From positions 124,001 to 188,000 of IMG/VR virus record IMGVR_UViG_3300018424_000006: DNA of 64,000 nucleotides; one strand, written 5' to 3'. Shown in pieces: positions 1,217 through 26,175 of the stretch (position 1 is its first letter; each line of letters starts with the position of its first letter). The translations under genes and the position numbers were made by a program. Below the pieces are notes generated by a model. That model was not told where the DNA came from. It saw only the letters and a program-made list of their open reading frames with translations, and searched no databases.

Positions 1217-2072
1217 CGTCAGCTAACCATTTCTTTAGAAGTTTGCCTACCATACCAGAGACATTACCGATGAAGAACAATTCTACATCTAGGTCATCTA
1301 GTAATTCACCAATCTTCTCTTGGATTAAAACTTGGTCTTCATTCGACGCTAAAGCAAGTAAAGTTAATTCGCTACTTACCCGCTCAATGTCTTTTGTTTC
1401 AATGAAGTACTCTAAGTCTTTGAAGATTGCTCTTACAGCCACTTCGAAATTAAAACCAAAGGCGAAGGAAACAGGTCGCATTTTAATGTGTTCTCTTGCA
1501 AGAAGCACTTTGTCGTTTGTTTCCATTTTAGTCAAAGCTTTCTTAGTCCGTAATCTAGATTTATGGATGATTTCTTTTTCATCTTCATCTAGTTCAACAT
1601 CGAACTTAACTTTAACATTCATAATTACTTCGTTATAGAACTCACCGATAATTGGATATAGTTCGCCCATCCCAATATTCGTTAGTTCATTAACTAGATT
1701 AATGAAAGATTCTTCAGGACTTAGTTCTTCATCAGAGAAGTGTTTGTCAACTAAATCCCTGTTGGTAGTATCAGCAATGTCTTCCATTGCATCTAACAAT
1801 GCGGCTAAAAGCTGTAGACTAATATCTTCATCGTTAGTTAAAACTAAACCAATTTCTTTAAGTACTTTCTTAGTATGTACTTTATAGACATCTTCGATTT
1901 CAGATGCTTTATCAGACTCGGTTGCTTCTGGGTGTGAAAGAGCCTGAGTAACTTCTGATTCATGATCACTATAATCGAATTTATCGAAAATAGAATCAAT
2001 GGATTCCAGATATCCTAATACGTCGGGTTTCATGATAGGGAGCAGGGTTTCCCTTTCGTTTTGAATGATCAT
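1203..2072 (-). CDS. Conserved hypothetical/virion protein (phiKZ gp79 position)
   Basis: Acidic ORF; start moved to ATG 2072 after an AGGAG RBS; lies directly upstream of the gp80-like gene. Confidence 0.6.
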   Translation of the reverse strand: MIIQNERETLLPIMKPDVLGYLESIDSIFDKFDYSDHESEVTQALSHPEATESDKASEIEDVYKVHTKKVLKEIGLVLTNDEDISLQLLAALLDAMEDIADTTNRDLVDKHFSDEELSPEESFINLVNELTNIGMGELYPIIGEFYNEVIMNVKVKFDVELDEDEKEIIHKSRLRTKKALTKMETNDKVLLAREHIKMRPVSFAFGFNFEVAVRAIFKDLEYFIETKDIERVSSELTLLALASNEDQVLIQEKIGELLDDLDVELFFIGNVSGMVGKLLKKWLADDEDN

Positions 2073-2184
2073 TCGGCATTCTCCTGTATACAATAGATTC
2101 GCCGAATTAAAATAAAAAGGAAGGGGATATAATAAGGTAAGAAATGCCCTTTTCTAATAATATTTTTAAGTAAGGATTCATAAA

Positions 2185-2667
2185 ATGGCAAGCACTGAAA
2201 AGTCGGCTTCTGAAGTCGCATCCATGGAACGCTATCGTAAAGAAAAAGCACAGAAAGCGGAAAAGAAAAAGCAGCGTGAAGAAGAGCAGCTAACTGAAGA
2301 AGCTGCTCTACAATCTTGGGATGATGTTCATTCCATTATTGGTGATGTCCGTAATATGATCGGACAAATCACAATCTCTATTCAACAAGCGATTACTCTT
2401 GCCGCATCCATCGACCTAGACTACTCAACGAACATCGAAAATCTAAAGTTACATTCAGCAGATCTGGCTAAGGCCTCTATCGAATTCAATAATGACGTCA
2501 AGCAATATGACGACAAGAAAGGTCCAGTTGCTCCTGAAGACTATATGACCTTCCTAAGTGCCATGAGCAAAATGATGTCTGGTTACATCGAATCGTTCCA
2601 TCAAAAGATTGTTGCTATCGGCGATATCATCGAAGCCGTTAAGAAAGAAGCGAAGGATAAACAGTAA
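2185..2667 (+). CDS. Hypothetical helical protein
   Basis: 160 aa ORF, AAGGA RBS, TAATG stop/start coupling to the next gene. Confidence 0.7.
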   Translation: MASTEKSASEVASMERYRKEKAQKAEKKKQREEEQLTEEAALQSWDDVHSIIGDVRNMIGQITISIQQAITLAASIDLDYSTNIENLKLHSADLAKASIEFNNDVKQYDDKKGPVAPEDYMTFLSAMSKMMSGYIESFHQKIVAIGDIIEAVKKEAKDKQ

Positions 2668-4181
2668 TGTCTTACGAAGAAACAGTACAACAAAACGAAG
2701 ATGTTAGTATTGATACTAGCGACTTCGCAAATGCAGTTAGTCCTACTGGAGAGTATGGGGATGACTTCCCTCTCTCCGCTCTAACTGAAAACCTTTCTAA
2801 TGAAGCATTTCTTGCTATCCAGAAAATCTTTAAAGAAAACACTAATATCGATAAAGAGACTCGGGAATTAATTCTTGAGTCTTTCCGTAGTGCTCTGTCT
2901 TCTCAGTTCTTTGATGATACTTATCAACGTTTAGTAGATGCTGCTAATCGCGACTGGAAACAAGTCGTTGAAGTAGACGGCAATAAGCTTCGTATAATGA
3001 AGCGTTCAGCCGCTAAGCCTACTGGCGGTAAGAAGTTACAAGGTCAAGCCGCTATCGACTTCATGAACAGCCAGATTAATGGTACTGGCTCTGTTAAGGT
3101 TCCTTTATGGAACAGTGGCATCACTGTCCTTTTGGGTAACTTTAAAGAACTCGAGTATATGGAAGTAATCGCTAAGATTGCTTTAAGCCGTATGGAGCTA
3201 GGTGCTTCTACTCGCGGTGCTCTATTCAGCGGTGATGATGTTTACATTACCATGGAAGTTGTAGACTTTATTTTAAGTAAAGTTATGGCTTCTACTCTGA
3301 AAGATTCTTCTAAGTCTAACTTAAAAGAACACATTTTAGTTTCTGATATCCCTACTCTTCTTGCAGGTGCGTTATCTGCCCTTAACCCTAAAGGCTATCC
3401 TATTAACCATACGTGTGTTAATGTGGCTAAAGGCGAATGTACATACGGCACTAAGATTGAAGAGAAAGACGGTAAGTATAAACAATACGGGATGGTTGAC
3501 TTTAAGAAGCTTCTATGGGTTGACCGTGGTCGTGTTTCTAAAGAACTAGGCCGTTTAGTAAATGCTAGCTGGGAATCAGTTTCAAATGAAGAAGTTAAGA
3601 AGATGCAAGCTTCTCTTCTTCCAGATCAAATCATTGGTCCTCTTGAATCTGATGCGGGCCTATTTAAGATTGTAGGTCAACATCCTAATCTAGCAGACTA
3701 CCAACGTCTTTCTACTGAATGGATTAATGAAGTTATCAATGCTGTTAACCGTGTTATGGTTACTGCCGATGATGCTACTGAACGTGAGCGTATTGAAACT
3801 CGTGTTCGTGAAATTGAAACATTCCAAGAAACGATTGGACGTCGTCGTAACATTGCATGGATTAAAGAAATCATCATGGAAATTCCAGATGAAGATGAGT
3901 CTATTGTGATGGAAGGTGAAGAAGCTATTGCAGGTATTCTTGATCAGCAGCTTGGTACTTTATACGCCGAAGAAATTGATGAAGGTATTCGTGACTATAA
4001 AGACGCTTGTACAATCTCTGTAGTAGGCTTGCCTAACTTTGAATGTCCTGTATGTCATAGTTCTCAAACTGACTCTAGTCGCTATCCTAGTCTGATTCCT
4101 TTGAATCTGATTACCTATTTTTTCAATATAGGGGAATGGAAGCGTATGACGACGCAACAGAGAGCGGGAATCTACCGATAA
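2667..4181 (+). CDS. Conserved protein (phiKZ gp77-like); putative tail/baseplate assembly chaperone
   Basis: 504 aa with C-x6-C and CPVC motifs and a C-terminal YFF encoded by a slippery site; synteny next to the helicase block. Confidence 0.6.
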   Translation: MSYEETVQQNEDVSIDTSDFANAVSPTGEYGDDFPLSALTENLSNEAFLAIQKIFKENTNIDKETRELILESFRSALSSQFFDDTYQRLVDAANRDWKQVVEVDGNKLRIMKRSAAKPTGGKKLQGQAAIDFMNSQINGTGSVKVPLWNSGITVLLGNFKELEYMEVIAKIALSRMELGASTRGALFSGDDVYITMEVVDFILSKVMASTLKDSSKSNLKEHILVSDIPTLLAGALSALNPKGYPINHTCVNVAKGECTYGTKIEEKDGKYKQYGMVDFKKLLWVDRGRVSKELGRLVNASWESVSNEEVKKMQASLLPDQIIGPLESDAGLFKIVGQHPNLADYQRLSTEWINEVINAVNRVMVTADDATERERIETRVREIETFQETIGRRRNIAWIKEIIMEIPDEDESIVMEGEEAIAGILDQQLGTLYAEEIDEGIRDYKDACTISVVGLPNFECPVCHSSQTDSSRYPSLIPLNLITYFFNIGEWKRMTTQQRAGIYR

Positions 4182-4597
4182 CATCTAGGTTCTTTGAACC
4201 GCCCAAAGATGCTTTCAGTAATACCATGAACGAATTGATAAGGCTACCTCCTAAGTTAACGGGGGTAGCCTTTGATATGGCCGCTACAGAAATCTACGAA
4301 CGGAACTTTGGTATCTATTCCCATTCCCCGGAAACCGATCCGAATAATCCAGTTCCCTTATCTACTTATAACTCTAAGATAGATGCTCGTAGAACTAACC
4401 CGTTACGAAATGAAGTTAAGCGACTTCTTTCCATGCAAGCTCCAAAAAAATTAGGTATGGGTATTATGGATATCCTTAATCTAGATCCTCATACTTATGC
4501 AAGTCTTATTGAAGGCCTAGAATCTTATAATAAAACTGAACTAGCTATGAGAGAGCAACAGGAAGAAGAACTTAAAGAAATGACAGGTCAGGATTAA
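4136..4597 (+). CDS. Hypothetical protein; probable -1 frameshift extension (GT-like) of the upstream gene
   Basis: Overlaps the upstream ORF in the -1 frame; GIMDILNLDP...Y..LIE resembles tail-chaperone GT/T4 gp51-type C-termini. Confidence 0.55.
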   Translation: MEAYDDATESGNLPITSRFFEPPKDAFSNTMNELIRLPPKLTGVAFDMAATEIYERNFGIYSHSPETDPNNPVPLSTYNSKIDARRTNPLRNEVKRLLSMQAPKKLGMGIMDILNLDPHTYASLIEGLESYNKTELAMREQQEEELKEMTGQD

Positions 4598-4609
4598 ACA
4601 AAAAAATAA

Positions 4610-4639
4610 AGCTACTACTCCCATGAGGGAGTAGTAGCT
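4610..4639. terminator. Bidirectional intrinsic terminator
   Basis: 13-bp inverted repeat AGCTACTACTCCC/GGGAGTAGTAGCT between convergent genes, with an adjacent A-tract. Confidence 0.85.
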
Positions 4640-4648
4640 ATTATGCCG

Positions 4649-5506
4649 TTAGATTAGGTGAAGGCTATGGATAGTTACTTCACGACCTACTACATCTTCA
4701 GAGATACAGTCAGCTAGGTTAAGGCCTTCCTTACCAATCTCTTCTAGAGTACGATCGAATCTTATTGCAGCGAATTCGTCATCAAAGTTTATCTCTGCTG
4801 CATCCAGAGTACCTTTAGTTATCGCCGATGTAAGATTAGTAATCTCATAGAAAGATAGTACACGAGTAGGAGAAGAGTCTTTGATTCCAGCCAGTAAGAT
4901 AGGACGTCCATTTGACTTAGTAGCAATTGCTATATAGTCAACTAACGTACTAGGGCCATCACCAATTGAGACGCTGAAGTCAGGACAGTTCTCCATCATA
5001 TCAAGTACAGTTTGTACAGAGAATGTTTTATCGCCAACAGCTTCAGACTCACCAAATTCCATAGCTAGAGCGTCTAAAGCAGATAACTTAGAAAGTTGCT
5101 TAAACTTCGGACTAAAGTCTTCAGTTCTCTCTAATTTTTTATCTCCTTTAAACTCTGACACCAAGCGGCTGATTGCAGGCTTCAAACCTTTCAATAAAGG
5201 TAGAAGAGCTTTAACGCCACCTAGGAACTCATCCATTTCTTTACATGCAAAGAAGTTAACAAGAGCCATCCATTGATTAGCCGGAACATCAATCTCCATT
5301 ATTGACCGTACTCCTGTCTCGGTATAGATAAAGGCAATGCGATTGCCTTTATCGTCCGTCTCATCGAAGTTAGTACGAGAATGCATAATCGTCATCAGGT
5401 CATCTAACTCTTTAGAGTCGATGAAGTTTTTAGTAACGTTTACAAAAGCTGCAAGATAGCCATTCATTTCTTCGTTGGTAAGAGTAGTAGTTAGTGCAAA
5501 TTTCAT
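4649..5506 (-). CDS. Hypothetical early protein
   Basis: 285 aa ORF, GGAG RBS, downstream of a TATATTAC promoter. Confidence 0.75.
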   Translation of the reverse strand: MKFALTTTLTNEEMNGYLAAFVNVTKNFIDSKELDDLMTIMHSRTNFDETDDKGNRIAFIYTETGVRSIMEIDVPANQWMALVNFFACKEMDEFLGGVKALLPLLKGLKPAISRLVSEFKGDKKLERTEDFSPKFKQLSKLSALDALAMEFGESEAVGDKTFSVQTVLDMMENCPDFSVSIGDGPSTLVDYIAIATKSNGRPILLAGIKDSSPTRVLSFYEITNLTSAITKGTLDAAEINFDDEFAAIRFDRTLEEIGKEGLNLADCISEDVVGREVTIHSLHLI

Positions 5507-7462: not shown

Positions 7463-7945
7463 TTAAAGAATCCTATCCGCTGTACCGAAGTCAATTACTT
7501 CTTCGGCAGTTAAGAACATTTCTAATTTAGTAGCTTCTTGTACGCTTTCTGGATTACGTCCGGAATTACGTCCAATTACTTCTTCTTGGAAGCGTTTCAT
7601 CTGCTTACCAAAATCAGATGAAGCACTATCGTTAGGGAAACAACCACGAGGCATATGGAACATTACTTCAGAATGTTTACTCACTACCCGCTTGCCTTTG
7701 GTTCCATTAGAAGCTATTGTAGCAGCAGCACTAGAAGCCTCTCCTACAACGATGGTCCAAATGTCATTTGGAATTTCATCCATCGTACTTACAATCCCGA
7801 AACAAGCGTTAAGATCCCCACCACAGCTAGCAATATACATAAAGATGTCATCGGAATTCTCCTTGGATATCTCTACCAATTTACGGATAATGGCCTTGCC
7901 TGACGCAGAGGTCAACGTACCTTCAAGTACAACTATATTACTCAT
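7463..7945 (-). CDS. clpP: ClpP-family serine protease
   Basis: YIASCGG, GEASSAAA (Ser), VMFHMP (His) and FLTAEEVIDFGTAD motifs. Confidence 0.85.
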   Translation of the reverse strand: MSNIVVLEGTLTSASGKAIIRKLVEISKENSDDIFMYIASCGGDLNACFGIVSTMDEIPNDIWTIVVGEASSAAATIASNGTKGKRVVSKHSEVMFHMPRGCFPNDSASSDFGKQMKRFQEEVIGRNSGRNPESVQEATKLEMFLTAEEVIDFGTADRIL

Positions 7946-12195: not shown

Positions 12196-14244
12196 TTATA
12201 CATTCTCGATTCCGACACCCTGAGAATTCAGGAGGTGATTAACAAAGGCACATGCTCGTTCATTCCCTAGGGGGAACTTCTCACGATCAACAACCATTGG
12301 AATATCCGACGGGTTCTCTGCCATTAATATGTTCTTCACCACTTCACGGTGTACGGCTGGGTTGGTAGTTAGGCCAATTAAATGCGCGGTGGCTGTGCTA
12401 CCGATTGAACCACTTAATGCTCTACCCTCAGACTCACCGTATACACGAGGGGCCTGTTCTTTGGTTGGAGTAGAATAACGAGTAGCTCGGCTGCTAGATG
12501 CTGGTAAGCCGTGGTGTTGTAAACGAGGACCAGTACAAGCCATAGACTTGGATTCTGATTTCTCAAGAACAATCATGTACTTACCGCCGATTAATACTTC
12601 GGACTTGGTACGTACTCGGTTACCTGCGCTGTTGGTGTAGGTTACTGGCGAAATGTTAACTGGACGGAATTCTTCCATTTTCCTATACAAGTCAATGGTT
12701 GTCCAATCATTATCTGCCGGGATGTGCAAATAGATTCCATCTCGATAGACAGTTTCTAAATGGGCATTACGCTTATTACCCTTAAGCTTTCTGAATAAGT
12801 CTGCCATTGGCGGACTTGCAATTTCATAGTACTTAAGTAGATGAATAGCTGCACCATCCATATCGCCTTTATCCATCATTGCTTTAACATCAAGCGTGAT
12901 GTCACGACTAGCTGCATTAATGTACTGTTCATACAACTGACCCGGGTTTAGACGGGCTATTGCAGAACGACCATAAACACAGACATCTGCCACGTTACCG
13001 AAATCATCGGTAGGCATTTGATCGTCAGGCAAAATTACGCACTCTACACCTTTACCGCCATGAAGATCCGAAAGTTTAGCAGATTCCATTAAATCGAAAT
13101 CGTATTCATACTTAACTTCTACGCGGAACTCATTTAGCTCAGCAGCACGATAGGTTCGCTTAATGGACTTAGAAGCATGATTAAGCTTTGCTCGGTTTTC
13201 TGCATTAGGCTCGTAGGCATATGCCCGGGCGAACAACGACAAAAGTTTCGGCTGAATCTTACTGTCGTTACCAGACATTTGAATTGACTTACGAATATCC
13301 AGTAGCTTATCAAAATATGCTTTCTGCAAATCGTTATATCGCAAAGCCTGTCCGGCCAGCTCGTCTGGTACCGTCCGGTAACGAGTCTTTGAGTTGGTAC
13401 AGTTAAGTACATCGACATCATATATCAAGGCACCCGGCTTACCGAATATCAAATCATCGAAAACCAAATCTGGTTCCATTAAAGCTTCTGGCGTTAAGGC
13501 TATTGCATCAACTGCACTGCCTTTCTTACGACGCCCAAAAACAATCCCATGGTCTGGGACTCGATCCCCCACGTCTGGATGGATCTTAGGATTTTCCGGA
13601 GTACCATAAAGGTTCAACGGTACCCAATCTCCTCCAAACTCAATCACTCGGCTGGAGACGCCTTTACTTTTACAGCGTTCGTTAAACGATTCCGATACTA
13701 CAAAACCGTCCTCTATTACACCGGGTACGCCTAGATAACATACGTTAGCCATTACGCCCGGAGAATAATATCCGTTCTTGATATTATTACTGTAGGATAG
13801 CATGGTACCTTTCTCAATGAAATCGCCACGCTGAAGATGCTGATAAGCTGGATTGATCTGGCTCTTAAAACCAAATGTATCATGATTCTTATGGTACATC
13901 TCGATATCCATAGTATCGAAGTTTCCAAATTCATCTTGATAGATAATAGTTGTAAGAGGGTTAGTTTTAATCGCATATTCCCCATACTGTGCCGAGTATT
14001 TAGGAATAACATCTACGATCGTTAAATCACACGGTGCCTTTGTACCGAAAACATATTCGGACATTTGGGTTTCGAATCCATGAAGACAACGTGAAGGTTC
14101 GGCTCCTGCAACTTGAATTGCTTGTGCTAACTGACTAGTTACCATAGCTAGACGAGATGAGGAATCTTTCGTAACAAATGAAGTATACGTGGATGCAGCG
14201 CCCATTGCTTGAACGTCATTATGCATCTTTGTGGGTTGGTTCAT
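12196..14244 (-). CDS. Non-virion RNA polymerase beta subunit, C-terminal part (gp71-73-like), intronless
   Basis: DSSSRLAM..SQLAQA, IEDGFVVSES, KLSDLHGGKG, RLNPGQLYE and RVYGESE motifs. Confidence 0.93.
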   Translation of the reverse strand: MNQPTKMHNDVQAMGAASTYTSFVTKDSSSRLAMVTSQLAQAIQVAGAEPSRCLHGFETQMSEYVFGTKAPCDLTIVDVIPKYSAQYGEYAIKTNPLTTIIYQDEFGNFDTMDIEMYHKNHDTFGFKSQINPAYQHLQRGDFIEKGTMLSYSNNIKNGYYSPGVMANVCYLGVPGVIEDGFVVSESFNERCKSKGVSSRVIEFGGDWVPLNLYGTPENPKIHPDVGDRVPDHGIVFGRRKKGSAVDAIALTPEALMEPDLVFDDLIFGKPGALIYDVDVLNCTNSKTRYRTVPDELAGQALRYNDLQKAYFDKLLDIRKSIQMSGNDSKIQPKLLSLFARAYAYEPNAENRAKLNHASKSIKRTYRAAELNEFRVEVKYEYDFDLMESAKLSDLHGGKGVECVILPDDQMPTDDFGNVADVCVYGRSAIARLNPGQLYEQYINAASRDITLDVKAMMDKGDMDGAAIHLLKYYEIASPPMADLFRKLKGNKRNAHLETVYRDGIYLHIPADNDWTTIDLYRKMEEFRPVNISPVTYTNSAGNRVRTKSEVLIGGKYMIVLEKSESKSMACTGPRLQHHGLPASSSRATRYSTPTKEQAPRVYGESEGRALSGSIGSTATAHLIGLTTNPAVHREVVKNILMAENPSDIPMVVDREKFPLGNERACAFVNHLLNSQGVGIENV

Positions 14245-23742: not shown

Positions 23743-24939
23743 CTAATATCTTCGACAAGTATCGCTACTACTTGCCCGTTCTCTTATGAACTGCTTCAGG
23801 TTTTCCCTGAATGTAGAGACTATATCTTCATCCTCATGTACTCCATTTGTACGTAAAGGAGACCCCCATTCGATCCGCATTCGGACCACTTAGTCGTTGA
23901 ACCTATCTCATATTCTCGAAAGAACTTAGAGACTTCGCTGCGCCGGTTCTCCATCTATCCGTAAGGGTTTTTACCATGCCTAACGCTTCCATTACTGGGT
24001 TAGGTATTACACTCTATTTCTAGGTGTAAGTGGTACCTTACGGCTTTAGTGAGTTCCCGCAATTAGAGGGTTTGTTTTCTAGTAAATTACTTTACTAGGC
24101 AGACTTTTTAAACATAAAGCCTTGATAAGGCTCCATTGTCTTTATGCAGCGAGCAATGCGTTTTGAATTTATACCTGTAACTTTCTCCGCATGACGGATA
24201 GAGTTATACGTTTCTTCATTATCTCCATTAATGGAAACTACTTTGAAACGCGGAGGCATTTTATTCCTAGAGTAATTCACCAAGTTTCCATCTATATCAA
24301 CTAGATGGACTTGGTATCCGCAGTACTCCATTCCATTCCCATTCTTATCAAGAGCTTCAGAGAAGCTTGCAGGATTTCGGTCAAGGAATGTTGCTGCGTC
24401 AGCTTGGCTGACATGGCTAAACTTTTTACCTGTTTTCATGCATGTAAGTACAACAAAATTGTTATCCTTACGAAGTCCATGTTTAAAGGCATGTTTAGAA
24501 TTCTCTGCATAGCTAACCCATTCAAGATTAGCAGGTTTGTTATTTCGCTTGTCTCCATCAATATGGTTGATGAGAGGCTTGTCTTTTAGATTTGGTATAA
24601 AGGCTAATGCAACTAGTCTATGATGTAACTCATTCTTTCCATTTACTCTAACAGTAGAGTATCCGGCGGATTGAGTTTCTGACGTAGCTACTTTACCTCT
24701 AGGACCAAATACTTCTAGAGTTTCTTTCGAAATAACATATCCATCAAACCCCGGTATAAAGTAAAGGTTATCTTTACAAACCAATGGTTTAGTGAAATAC
24801 AGAGAGCCGTCAACAAATACCACAAAGCGATGAAGCCCTGTTGGCAGTTCAGGCATATGTTCCATACAAAGATCTTGGAAACACTTATCGTTGGAATCAC
24901 TACTATTTTCCACGACTTAGTTCCATATGTTATTGGTTT
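23743..24939 (-). mobile_element. Group I self-splicing intron (1197 nt) with homing endonuclease
   Basis: The 5' exon ends in U (GAT) and the intron ends in G. Conserved core elements are present: P AATTGCGGGAA, Q CGCAGC, R GTTCAACGACTA, S AAGATATAGTC, and P3 ACCCTC/GGGGGT. Removal restores frame and the catalytic motif. Confidence 0.93.
24095..24913 (-). CDS. Intron-encoded HNH homing endonuclease (NUMOD4-like + HNH + NUMOD1-like repeats)
   Basis: HRLVALAFIPN..INHIDGDKRNN..NLEWVSYAEN; C-terminal YNSIRHAEKVTGI helix-turn-helix. Confidence 0.93.
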   Translation of the reverse strand: MENSSDSNDKCFQDLCMEHMPELPTGLHRFVVFVDGSLYFTKPLVCKDNLYFIPGFDGYVISKETLEVFGPRGKVATSETQSAGYSTVRVNGKNELHHRLVALAFIPNLKDKPLINHIDGDKRNNKPANLEWVSYAENSKHAFKHGLRKDNNFVVLTCMKTGKKFSHVSQADAATFLDRNPASFSEALDKNGNGMEYCGYQVHLVDIDGNLVNYSRNKMPPRFKVVSINGDNEETYNSIRHAEKVTGINSKRIARCIKTMEPYQGFMFKKSA

Positions 24940-26175
24940 ATCTGCGTTGGGCGCTGCAATAGCTAGAACGCTAATTTCGGAAGAGTTTCGACTAAACCCT
25001 GTAATACGGAACAACTGAGTTGAACCATATGCTAGTGTAGGATAACGAGTGAACGTTACCCAGAAGCCTTCTCCATTTGGAGTCTCTTTCACAAGCTGAT
25101 GCAGTTCGTCCCATAGGAATGAGTCGATTTTCGCACTATGCTTTATGATGTAGTCGTAGGCATCTTTTTCACTATAGCCATGCTTGTTCATAAGTCTATT
25201 TATTAAATGGACTCGGAACAGTACACAGCCTTCTGAGTAGGGAATAGTTAGTTCTTCATAATGATGGCGATCAGTACGAGAAGTAATTGTGGTACGGAAG
25301 CTGAAAGCTACACGGCTACCATAAATGGAGCTTCGGAACCAACCTGATTTAGATGCCAATATCTCTTTGAGAATATGGGTATAGTAGTCTGCTAAGTTAA
25401 CAGATACTTGGGTCAGTTTGTTTCCTATGCGCCGCAGGTCACTTTCATCTCGCAATTCAATCACTTTAAAGATTGCTTCACGAGCATGTCGCAAGGAGCT
25501 ATCTGAATAGTCTCCCATAGCGGTCTTCTCGATTACAAAAGCGATCTTATTTGGAATCGGCAAATACTTGCACGTAAGCTCGTTTCTGTAACGATGAAAG
25601 AACGTAATATACTCTTTATGAGTATTACGCCCTCGTAGACGTTTATCGATTAAATCAATCACACGATCGAAATCTTCGATGGTTTCATTGAGCCCCCGCC
25701 TTAAACCCATGTCATCAATTTGATTCTTGAGTCGAATGGCTTGGGAATTGGTTGGTTCTGGTGCTCGATAGTTCGTATTACAAAGATACTCAATACCGGA
25801 CCAAGAGCCTTGCTGCTTAACCGTTAAGGCTGACGATAACATCTCCCAAACAATGGGAGTGAACATGCCGTGGATGCCCTCTGGCGCACGTATCCAGAGA
25901 TTACTCTCAATAGGTCGAGTGTAATCGTAATCTACCGTCTGATTGCATTTAGGGCATGTCATACCAACAAAGGTACTGTTTGCCAAATAGCCGCAACCGC
26001 AGGTAGGAACACTGTTCAGCGTTACCTCATCCTTACCATAAGTAGTAAGGATTAAATTTTCAAGGGTCTCTTGATTTAATTTAGTAGATAAGTCGAAGTC
26101 ATTAAGTATGACTGGCTTAAATGGTAAAGCTTGAAAGAGTCTGTCTGGGTTTACTAAGGATAGCGTTTTTGCCAT
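24940..26175 (-). CDS. nvRNAP beta'-N exon 1 (gp55-like); spliced product 484 aa
   Basis: CGCG...CPKC Zn finger, KSGWFR..YGSR, RYPTL..GS; ends APNAD. Confidence 0.92.

Follow-up and report, generated by a model that had tools for sequence, protein, structure and literature searches.

[quoted passage not shown] The myovirus P2 E/E+E' pair is reported to use a T-run slip site. The T4 baseplate-hub assembly chaperones gp26 and gp51 (both covered by Pfam PF12322) form a separate family, of which gp51 is needed for hub assembly but is absent from particles (PMC3004832), and T4 gene 26 also yields two nested products (26 and 26' in the RefSeq record), the second from an internal start. Slippery heptamers of the U_UUU_UUN class are used at HIV-1 gag-pol, where the site is U_UUU_UUA (PMC4373837), and U_UU.U_UU.C is used by IS transposases (PMC4066793). 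Finally, phiKZ gp77 is Chimalliviridae core gene cg18 (PMC10299810; Goslar gp081, RAY gp267, 201phi2-1 gp136), which published tables and database records list as a hypothetical protein followed by a separate small ORF (phiKZ gp76.4, 201phi2-1 gp135). Here we describe a homologue of this gene in a 64,000-nucleotide stretch of a virus record from a metagenome assembly (hereafter the window), which very probably combines the expression logic of the first system with a protein that looks like a distant, enlarged relative of the second. The features of the locus are as follows.

2185..2667, plus strand: upstream ORF of 160 aa, the positional equivalent of phiKZ gp78, whose stop overlaps the ATG of the next ORF (ATGA), so that the two are probably translationally coupled.
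2667..4181, plus strand: ORF A, the 0-frame product of 504 aa, homologue of phiKZ gp77/cg18.
3414..3440, plus strand: codons of C250 (3414-3416) and C258 (3438-3440), the first cysteine pair of the putative Zn site.
4044..4055, plus strand: codons of C460 (4044-4046) and C463 (4053-4055), the CPxC second cysteine pair.
4088..4090, plus strand: TAG in the -1 frame, which is open only from here on.
4118..4124, plus strand: slippery heptamer T_TTT_TTC (U_UUU_UUC), in phase with ORF A (Y484 wobble base, F485, F486).
4124..4597, plus strand: the -1 frame extension (B), 157 codons plus the stop, the C-terminal part of the predicted 643-aa trans-frame product, including the annotated ORF 4136-4597.
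4125..4181, plus strand: 0-frame tail after the slip site (18 codons plus stop), a stretch read in two frames.
4130..4138, plus strand: AGGGGA directly followed by ATG 4136, the annotated start of ORF B.
4610..4639, no strand assigned: perfect 13-bp hairpin between the stop of B and the convergent gene 4649-5506, which looks like a terminator and would mark the end of the gp78-like/A/B transcription unit.

The sequence-only reading of this locus had proposed that an in-phase heptamer near the end of ORF 2667-4181 leads by a -1 slip into ORF 4136-4597, with products of 504 and about 643 aa, and this observation is correct. The codons TAT TTT TTC lie at 4116-4124 in the frame of ORF A, which ends ...ITYFFNIGEWKR..., and 18 codons separate the heptamer from the stop. 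The -1 frame is open from 4091 to 4594, ahead of the TAA at 4595-4597, and after the slip it reads QYRGMEAYDD... for 157 aa, giving products of 504 aa and 486+157 = 643 aa (the junction would read YFF-QYR here and TFF-YFGG in phiKZ). Within the window, 76 ORFs of at least 100 aa hold 65 in-phase X_XXY_YYZ heptamers, and only 2 of these lead into a -1 ORF of at least 100 codons that runs well past the 0-frame stop: this site, and an overlap between an RNA polymerase ORF and an HNH endonuclease ORF.

To test whether the site is conserved beyond what the protein sequence requires, we compared homologous loci. A megablast of the region against phage records found nothing, so the phage is new at the DNA level, and a search for related loci in IMG/VR gave pattern matches of which none was confirmed, while a second found no conserved stretch. 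The comparison instead used 32 loci, comprising 22 from phage records (phiKZ, 201phi2-1, SPN3US, PCH45, RSF1, Vibrio, Erwinia, Klebsiella and Xanthomonas phages and one Bacillus phage) and 10 from metagenome contigs. Canonical T_TTT_TTN is present at the same conserved Phe-Phe in 28 of the 32, while three have N_TTT_TTY and one has TAT TTC, these four keeping the T_TTY tetramer. The preceding codon varies (TAT, GGT, ACT, CTT, GTT, GCT) but ends in T in 29 of 32 loci, including all 28 canonical sites, the first Phe codon is TTT in 31 of 32, and three loci have Leu (TTG or TTA) in place of the second Phe but keep the T run. From each gene's own codon usage 6.5 canonical sites are expected and 28 are seen, with a P of about 2e-19 if the loci were independent, although the loci are related and this value overstates the independence of the evidence. 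The GC-rich Xoo-sp14 has an expectation of 0.001 and still carries the site.

All 32 loci also keep a homologous -1 ORF of 143-177 aa that opens 1-40 codons upstream of the slip site, mostly with no ATG for tens of codons. In the 22 loci aligned for this purpose the extension is homologous from the slip site onward, including stretches upstream of any ATG. None of the 150 best of 1172 family cluster representatives has a C-terminal in-frame fusion of the two parts. The heptamer itself is of an efficient type, since H_HH.U_UU.Y is among the most efficient -1 motifs in E. coli and U_UU.U_UU.Y is among the efficient ones, with the U_UU.C and U_UU.U tetramers ranking second and third (PMC4066793). 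We found no conserved downstream hairpin, pseudoknot or upstream Shine-Dalgarno stimulator: folding z-scores run from -3.4 to +1.4 and are near zero in most loci, and there is no relevant Rfam match, although many bacterial and phage sites lack a defined stimulator. Metatranscriptome contigs spanning the site carry the genomic T6 with no inserted base, but contigs hide minor variants and so cannot exclude minor slipped transcripts.

The identity of ORF A as the phiKZ gp77 homologue is supported by sequence and position. A tblastn search with A hits 124 phage records and with phiKZ gp77 226 records, in the same set of phages, and A matches PHROG 4585 at E 2e-63, while the extension matches PHROG 12109. 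Pfam, NCBIfam and PHROGs gave no functional name for A, for B or for the upstream ORF, which has no family match. An ORF of 113-260 aa abuts or overlaps the start of the A homologue in the fetched loci that reach far enough upstream. A further search for homologous proteins with the profile returned only the same six proteins. The four cysteines C250, C258, C460 and C463 are invariant in an alignment of 122 sequences and in a second of 74, from which it is inferred that the protein probably binds zinc, as the sequence-only reading had suggested.

The AlphaFold2 model of A (pLDDT 90, pTM 0.90) has no PDB relative: Foldseek and an exhaustive structural aligner gave nothing meaningful (best Z 5.9), and there is no PDB sequence match. 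Outside its own family, the model matches only T4-like entries in BFVD described as baseplate hub assembly protein, chaperone or hub subunit (E 1e-3 to 0.5, probability up to 1.0, TM by target 0.45-0.52), and an ESM Atlas cluster with PF12322 in 87% of its members (TM 0.53 by target over residues 120-488, 248 residues aligned, rmsd 5.1). gp26 and gp51 had been named beforehand as proteins to compare with, and this comparison gave only a fold and motif resemblance, which is suggestive but not decisive, with no solved structure of that family to compare with. gp26 shares the CxC...CPxC...FF-end layout, with KCTCG and a CPEC followed by ..EFFELL at its end, and gp51 has CPKC and CC. On the other side, the PF12322 HMM hits neither A, nor 74 family members, nor this genome or those of phiKZ, SPN3US, AgentSmith, MJ359 and AH06, and hhalign of the A profile against the single T4 gp26 and gp51 sequences aligned only the CPxC motif, with probability 10-20%. 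The extension is predicted to be helical (pLDDT 73), its BFVD hits are only the same orphan ORF in related phages, and the only "tail assembly chaperone" row there has E 2.3 and probability 0.10. The idea that the extension is a gp25-like or hub protein is rejected, since hhalign of its profile against T4 gp25, 26, 51, 27, 28, 48 and 54 gave probabilities below 1%. Complex prediction of A(1-486) with the extension scored 0.05, which is evidence neither for nor against the extension packing on the core.

The neighbours of the gene are virion and non-virion RNA polymerase subunits, a gp79-like ORF, an NTP pyrophosphohydrolase and other nucleotide-metabolism genes, and a helicase, with no tape-measure gene beside it, and the synteny is the same in the other phages. 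The protein is not seen in virions: the Goslar homologue gp081 is not among the proteins to which all hub and inner-baseplate density was assigned (PMC13742148), and 201phi2-1 gp136 and gp135 carry no mass-spectrometry note, unlike their neighbour gp138.

Taken together, we consider that ORF A and the ORF after it are one recoded gene, with a probability of roughly 0.8 for the claim of one gene and two products by a -1 shift at this site. In this view most ribosomes read A to its stop, while a fraction slip back one base with both tRNAs on U_UUU_UUC and read 157 more codons, making a 643-aa protein with the same first 486 residues and a different, helical C-terminal domain. The arrangement would be ancestral to the whole phiKZ-like (Chimalliviridae) group and at least one related Bacillus jumbo phage, and the fact that no homologue seen has the two parts fused in frame suggests that both forms, in a set ratio, are needed. 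What the analysis establishes directly is the site, its phase, the -1 ORF and their conservation at the nucleotide level, whereas the existence of the trans-frame protein follows from sequence and conservation and not from protein detection, and we infer that the slip is ribosomal rather than transcriptional (likely, given recoding), the binding of zinc, and the assembly function, which is about as likely as not. As a putative Zn-binding, roughly two-fold enlarged distant relative of gp26/gp51, protein A may act as a non-virion assembly factor for the baseplate hub or tail, and the extension would add a second binding surface, which would be the logic of lambda G/GT carried out in a different protein family. 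The interpretation offered in the sequence-only reading, namely that the pair is the tail chaperone of phiKZ-like phages on G/GT logic, is therefore only partly supported: the frameshift, the gp77 identity, the putative zinc site and the absence of a tape-measure neighbour hold, and the expression logic fits, but membership of the lambda G/GT family is not supported, and a tail or baseplate role rests only on remote fold similarity.

The alternative that survives best, although we consider it doubtful, is that the recoding is real but the protein acts in transcription, replication or nucleus-related functions, as its conserved neighbours do. The synteny with RNA polymerase beta/beta' subunits and the gp75-like helicase is conserved from this window to phiKZ, the Vibrio phages and SPN3US, zinc-ribbon-like CPxC motifs are common in nucleic-acid enzymes, and the fold match to gp26/gp51 is only moderate (TM about 0.5). 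However, the only structural relatives outside the family are PF12322 hub-assembly proteins, found in two independent libraries, no nucleic-acid enzyme fold was found in the PDB by Foldseek or by the exhaustive aligner, and the block also holds virion genes, as the phiKZ gp79 homologue is a head protein and gp80 is the virion polymerase.

Transcriptional slippage, in which the host RNA polymerase or the phage's own multisubunit polymerases (whose slippage behavior is not known) would add one extra U on the T run in a fraction of transcripts, seems unlikely. The run is homopolymeric, with 7-8 T in many loci, UUUUUUU is avoided in all frames in E. coli genes partly for this reason (PMC4066793), and since the protein product would be identical the comparative data cannot separate the two mechanisms outright. 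Nevertheless, at least 11 of 32 loci, including this window, have only T6 followed by C and the tetramer-only loci have still shorter runs, which are short for polymerase slippage. What is conserved is a phased pattern (wobble T + TTT + TTN) and not the run length, and phase would not matter for polymerase slippage, while the four exceptions keep the ribosomal A-site tetramer U_UUY rather than a long run.

Still less likely is that A and B are two ordinary genes with B starting at its own ATG, as gene callers and GenBank records list them everywhere. An ATG lies 4 codons after the slip in this window, so independent initiation of B cannot be excluded for this particular phage, but the spacing from AGGGGA to this ATG is 0, in agreement with the sequence-only reading that it lacks a properly spaced ribosome binding site. 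Neither the spacing nor the ATG is conserved, and the ATG is not kept even in the closest relatives, since the closest of the compared loci (L024) has L at this position and another (L025) has K. In 26 of the 31 other loci the first ATG in the -1 frame is 17-139 codons after the slip, with homologous residues upstream of it, and it is at +4 only in two further loci (L026 and L031). In phiKZ about 85 conserved codons between gp77 and the annotated gp76.4 would be left unexplained, and this reading does not explain why the T run is kept against codon usage. A homopolymer sequencing or assembly error splitting one 640-aa ORF, conceivable because such runs are error-prone and the window is metagenomic, can be dismissed, since the same frame relation is found in 32 independent genomes and contigs from many laboratories and platforms with none in frame, the 0-frame tail is itself conserved (consensus ..YFFxxxxxR..) and modelled with high confidence as a helix (481-499), and RNA-derived contigs agree with the DNA.

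If the recoding is correct, one of the 72 core genes of the Chimalliviridae is mis-annotated in every deposited genome we looked at, and would encode two isoforms made by a frameshift kept since before these phages diverged. This would give a first functional handle on the gene, as a Zn-binding relative of the T4 hub-assembly chaperones, would extend the rule that tail assembly genes use a -1 frameshift to a new protein family and to giant contractile tails, and matters for annotation pipelines and for interpreting transposon, CRISPRi and proteomic data on these phages. A more tentative possibility is that nucleus-forming jumbo phages and their relatives have a single gp26/gp51-type hub-assembly chaperone gene that must be recoded, with the 0-frame and trans-frame isoforms playing the two roles that T4 divides between its paralogues gp26 and gp51, or lambda between G and GT, and with the slip ratio setting the stoichiometry of giant-tail initiation. 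That would make it an unrecognised, family-defining recoding event in an essential core gene and the first assembly-chaperone frameshift outside the classical tail-assembly-chaperone families.

Compared with phiKZ gp77/cg18, the gene is of the same family and has the same position between the gp78 and gp75-76 equivalents, and a literature search that did not cover subscription papers found no mention of a frameshift. Compared with HIV-1 gag-pol and the IS elements, the slippery heptamer class is the same, with U_UUU_UUA found here in two relatives, but those sites have a defined downstream stem-loop or pseudoknot and none is evident or conserved here. Compared with T4 gp26 and gp51, the only outside fold match, the 2+2 cysteine layout is shared, in gp26 CPxC is likewise followed by FF close to the C-terminus, and gp51 is absent from particles just as the Goslar homologue is absent from the solved baseplate, but A is more than twice as long, and T4 has two paralogous genes and no frameshift. 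We considered whether T4 gene 26 itself shifts into gene 25, which starts on its stop codon in the -1 frame, but this does not look so, as the FF of gp26 is TTC TTT, which is not slippery, and the -1 frame is closed by TGA. Compared with lambda G/GT and its equivalents, there is likewise a -1 slip near the 3' end of a putative non-virion assembly gene, with short and long products that share their N-terminal part, but there is no sequence or fold match to the tail-assembly-chaperone families, the 0-frame product is 504 aa rather than about 100-150 aa (4-5 times larger), it has a four-cysteine site, and the gene lies in an RNA polymerase/helicase block rather than immediately upstream of a tape-measure gene.

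To define the candidate recoding site, we first examined the reading frames of the window directly. The features on which the following analysis depends are these:

2667-4181, ORF A, the 0-frame product of 504 aa
4088-4090, TAG stop codon in the -1 frame
4116-4124, the codons TAT TTT TTC, in the frame of ORF A
4118-4124, the heptamer T_TTT_TTC, a correctly phased X_XXY_YYZ site
4136, ATG in the -1 frame, touched directly by AGGGGA with no spacer
4595-4597, TAA stop codon of the -1 frame (ORF B, the ORF that follows A)
4610-4639, perfect 13-bp hairpin between the convergent genes B and 4649-5506, with a T tract on the minus-strand side, terminator-like and possibly working in both directions

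There are 18 codons between the heptamer and the stop of ORF A, and the -1 frame is open from the TAG to the TAA, so that after a slip it reads QYRGMEAYDD... for 157 codons. The two predicted products are therefore 504 aa and 486+157 = 643 aa, and the anatomy described in the sequence-only reading, including these two sizes, was found to be correct. Within the window, 76 ORFs of at least 100 aa contain 65 in-phase heptamers, of which only two lead into a long -1 ORF that runs well past the 0-frame stop. One is the site considered here, while the other lies on the minus strand at 24095-26175, where an HNH endonuclease ORF (24095-24913, PHROG 59) overlaps by about 200 nt the 3' end of an RNA-polymerase beta-subunit-like ORF (24715-26175, PHROG 2987, whose profile match stops at residue 412 of 486), and an in-phase G_GGT_TTG near 24745-24751 leads into the endonuclease frame. 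This second case is probably a homing-endonuclease insertion beside or within the polymerase gene rather than a second recoding site.

The window is part of a 219,819-bp viral contig with direct terminal repeats that was assembled from a salt-marsh metagenome, and it has no close DNA relative among deposited phages. The gene order around the site matches the phiKZ block gp80-gp79-gp78-gp77 ... gp75-gp74, with a virion RNA-polymerase beta-like ORF, a gp79-like ORF, a 160-aa ORF whose stop overlaps the start of A, then A and B, and then nucleotide-metabolism genes, a helicase, and non-virion RNA-polymerase subunits. Elsewhere in the window, a single 682-aa ORF on the minus strand (12196-14244) matches one full-length RNA-polymerase PHROG (3295) and also two half-length ones (18919 over residues 18-397 and 23982 over residues 407-680), and a non-virion polymerase subunit that is split into two genes in some relatives appears to be one gene here. 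ORF A matches PHROG 4585 (E 2e-63) and by tblastn hits 124 phage records, while phiKZ gp77 hits 226, and an exhaustive HMMER search finds 1172 cluster representatives. In the Chimalliviridae core-genome table phiKZ gp077 is cg18, with Goslar gp081 and RAY gp267 as its equivalents, and it is listed as a "hypothetical protein" (PMC10299810).

To test whether the site is conserved, we compared 32 homologous loci. Of these, 22 were taken from phage records (phiKZ, 201phi2-1, HHBS36_1, Psa21, PCH45, SPN3US, RSF1, Xoo-sp14, five Erwinia phages, three Vibrio phages, Klebsiella and Serratia phages, Halocynthia phage JM-2012, and Bacillus phage AgentSmith) and 10 from metagenome contigs that carry the closest representatives, with amino-acid identity to A mostly at 20-40%. 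In 28 of the 32 loci, T_TTT_TTN is present at the position of the conserved Phe-Phe, of which F485 is invariant in an alignment of 122 sequences. Three exceptions have A_TTT_TTC, A_TTT_TTT, and C_TTT_TTT. The fourth, a 182-kb metagenome contig (L028, positions 2698-2712), is the only locus of the 32 without a T run and has TAT TTC CTG, which still contains the A-site tetramer T_TTC. Its -1 ORF is intact and opens just two codons before the site, and an ATT GGG GGC lies 4 codons downstream. It may be a naturally weakened or relocated site.

Every locus has a -1 ORF of 143-177 aa that opens only 1-40 codons upstream of the site. In 26 of the 31 loci other than the window, the first ATG in that frame lies 17-139 codons after the site, and it is at +4 only in two of the compared loci (L026 and L031). 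In phiKZ, about 85 conserved codons lie between the site and the annotated start of gp76.4. The extension is homologous across all loci from the slip site onward, where it begins Y-P or Y-x-G, followed by an HV..FG stretch, an AYDxxYGI-like motif, a G(M/L)sFxEF stretch, and a charged terminal helix. In the clade of PCH45, Ea277G, MJ359, and Yaphecito, the 0-frame continues 37-45 codons after the slip site, against 8-23 in the others, which makes the dual-coded stretch much longer, and PCH45 also has a second in-phase heptamer, G_GGG_GGC, 12 codons downstream. Bacillus phage vB_BspM_AgentSmith, a Gram-positive jumbo phage, carries the same gene (1922-4074 of its locus) with T_TTT_TTA and a 164-aa -1 ORF, and thus the gene with its predicted recoding reaches beyond the Gram-negative phiKZ-like phages.

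The codon preceding the run encodes Y, G, T, L, V, A, or I, and ends in T in 29 of 32 loci, including all 28 canonical sites. The first Phe codon is TTT in 31 of 32, and three loci replace the second Phe by Leu (TTG or TTA) and still keep the T run. Given the amino-acid sequence and codon usage of each gene, 6.5 canonical heptamers are expected and 28 are observed, with a Poisson-binomial P of about 2e-19 if the loci were independent, which they are not fully. The GC-rich Xoo-sp14 gene uses TTT for 6% of Phe codons and CTT for 2% of Leu codons, yet it has CTT TTT TTC. None of the 150 best family representatives carries the extension fused in frame, and the 0-frame tail after the site is conserved and is modelled as a confident helix, which points to a need for both products. 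We place the probability of recoding of some kind at about 0.93.

A ribosomal mechanism seems likely given recoding. U_UU.U_UU.Y belongs to the class of most efficient -1 heptamers measured in E. coli (H_HH.U_UU.Y), U_UU.U_UU.C and U_UU.U_UU.U shift measurably even without a stimulator, and the tetramers U_UU.C and U_UU.U rank second and third among tetramers (PMC4066793), which also covers the four non-canonical loci. U_UUU_UUA, seen in two relatives, is the HIV-1 site (PMC4373837). A folding analysis of the loci gave no conserved downstream structure, and no Rfam element was found.

With regard to the identity of the protein, searches returned no Pfam or NCBIfam hits and no PDB sequence match. 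With 122 homologues, AlphaFold2 gives a confident model of A (pLDDT 90, pTM 0.90), for which Foldseek and an exhaustive aligner find no solved relative. In BFVD, the hits after the family's own members are T4-like "baseplate hub assembly protein," "hub assembly chaperone," and "hub subunit" entries of 250-310 aa (E 1e-3 to 0.5, probability up to 1.0, TM by target 0.45-0.52), and in the ESM Atlas a cluster in which 87% of members carry PF12322 aligns to residues 120-488 with a TM of 0.53 by target. PF12322 covers both T4 gp26 and gp51. T4 gp26 has a CxC pair, then CPEC, then ...EFFELL at its C-terminus, and A has the same layout, with C250/C258, C460-P-x-C463, and FF 22 residues later, all four cysteines being invariant. 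However, the HMM-level tests for PF12322 fail, and we therefore describe A as a probable remote, enlarged relative of the family, not a member. gp26 and gp51 are hub-assembly chaperones, and gp51 is essential but absent from particles (PMC3004832). Two observations suggest that A is likewise not a virion part, namely that the Goslar virion structure assigns all hub and inner-baseplate density to other proteins (PMC13742148), and that in 201phi2-1 the homologue and the ORF after it carry no mass-spectrometry note, whereas their neighbour does. The extension is predicted to be helical, with only moderate confidence when modelled alone (pLDDT 73, pTM 0.39), and it matches only the same orphan ORF in related phages and no T4 hub or wedge protein.

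While the heptamer, its phase, the -1 ORF, and their conservation are read directly from the sequences, the slip itself and its ribosomal nature, zinc binding, and a role in assembly are inferred. The functional assignment is less certain and rests on fold similarity of about TM 0.5, and a role connected with the neighbouring transcription and replication genes remains a live rival, although we consider it the less likely one. For the mechanism, the main alternative is transcriptional slippage adding one U, which would give the same protein, but this seems unlikely since the conserved feature is a phased 6-T pattern rather than the run length, many loci have only T6, and RNA-library contigs from two samples span the site with no inserted base, although contigs cannot exclude a minor slipped species. 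Contigs from four salt-marsh metatranscriptome libraries cover much of 2000-5000 of the window at low depth with 100% identity, so that the phage, or its DNA, was present in those RNA libraries, whether through transcription or as carried-over DNA.

The interpretation offered in the sequence-only reading is thus supported in part. The frameshift it proposed is strongly supported, and the zinc binding it considered probable is supported by the four invariant cysteines. No paper in the literature searched links a frameshift to this gene or to any Chimalliviridae gene, and no database record that we examined annotates one.

It is also useful to compare the arrangement with known systems. In T4 (minus strand, 7740-7900 of the fetched region), gene 26 ends ...EFFELL and the ATG of gene 25 overlaps its stop codon in the -1 frame, which is the same frame relation as that of A and B, but T4 has TTC TTT and a TGA in the -1 frame, so there is no slip site, and the RefSeq record lists a nested product 26' from an internal start. 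The analogy to the tail chaperones G/GT, also drawn in the sequence-only reading, holds for the expression logic and plausibly for the kind of job (an assembly factor not built into the virion), but A is not a G/GT-family protein, being four to five times larger and not beside a tape-measure gene. Frameshifting in phage tail-assembly genes is already known, whereas here it occurs, on the comparative evidence, in a different protein family, is conserved across a whole family of giant phages, and sits in a core gene whose function is otherwise unknown.
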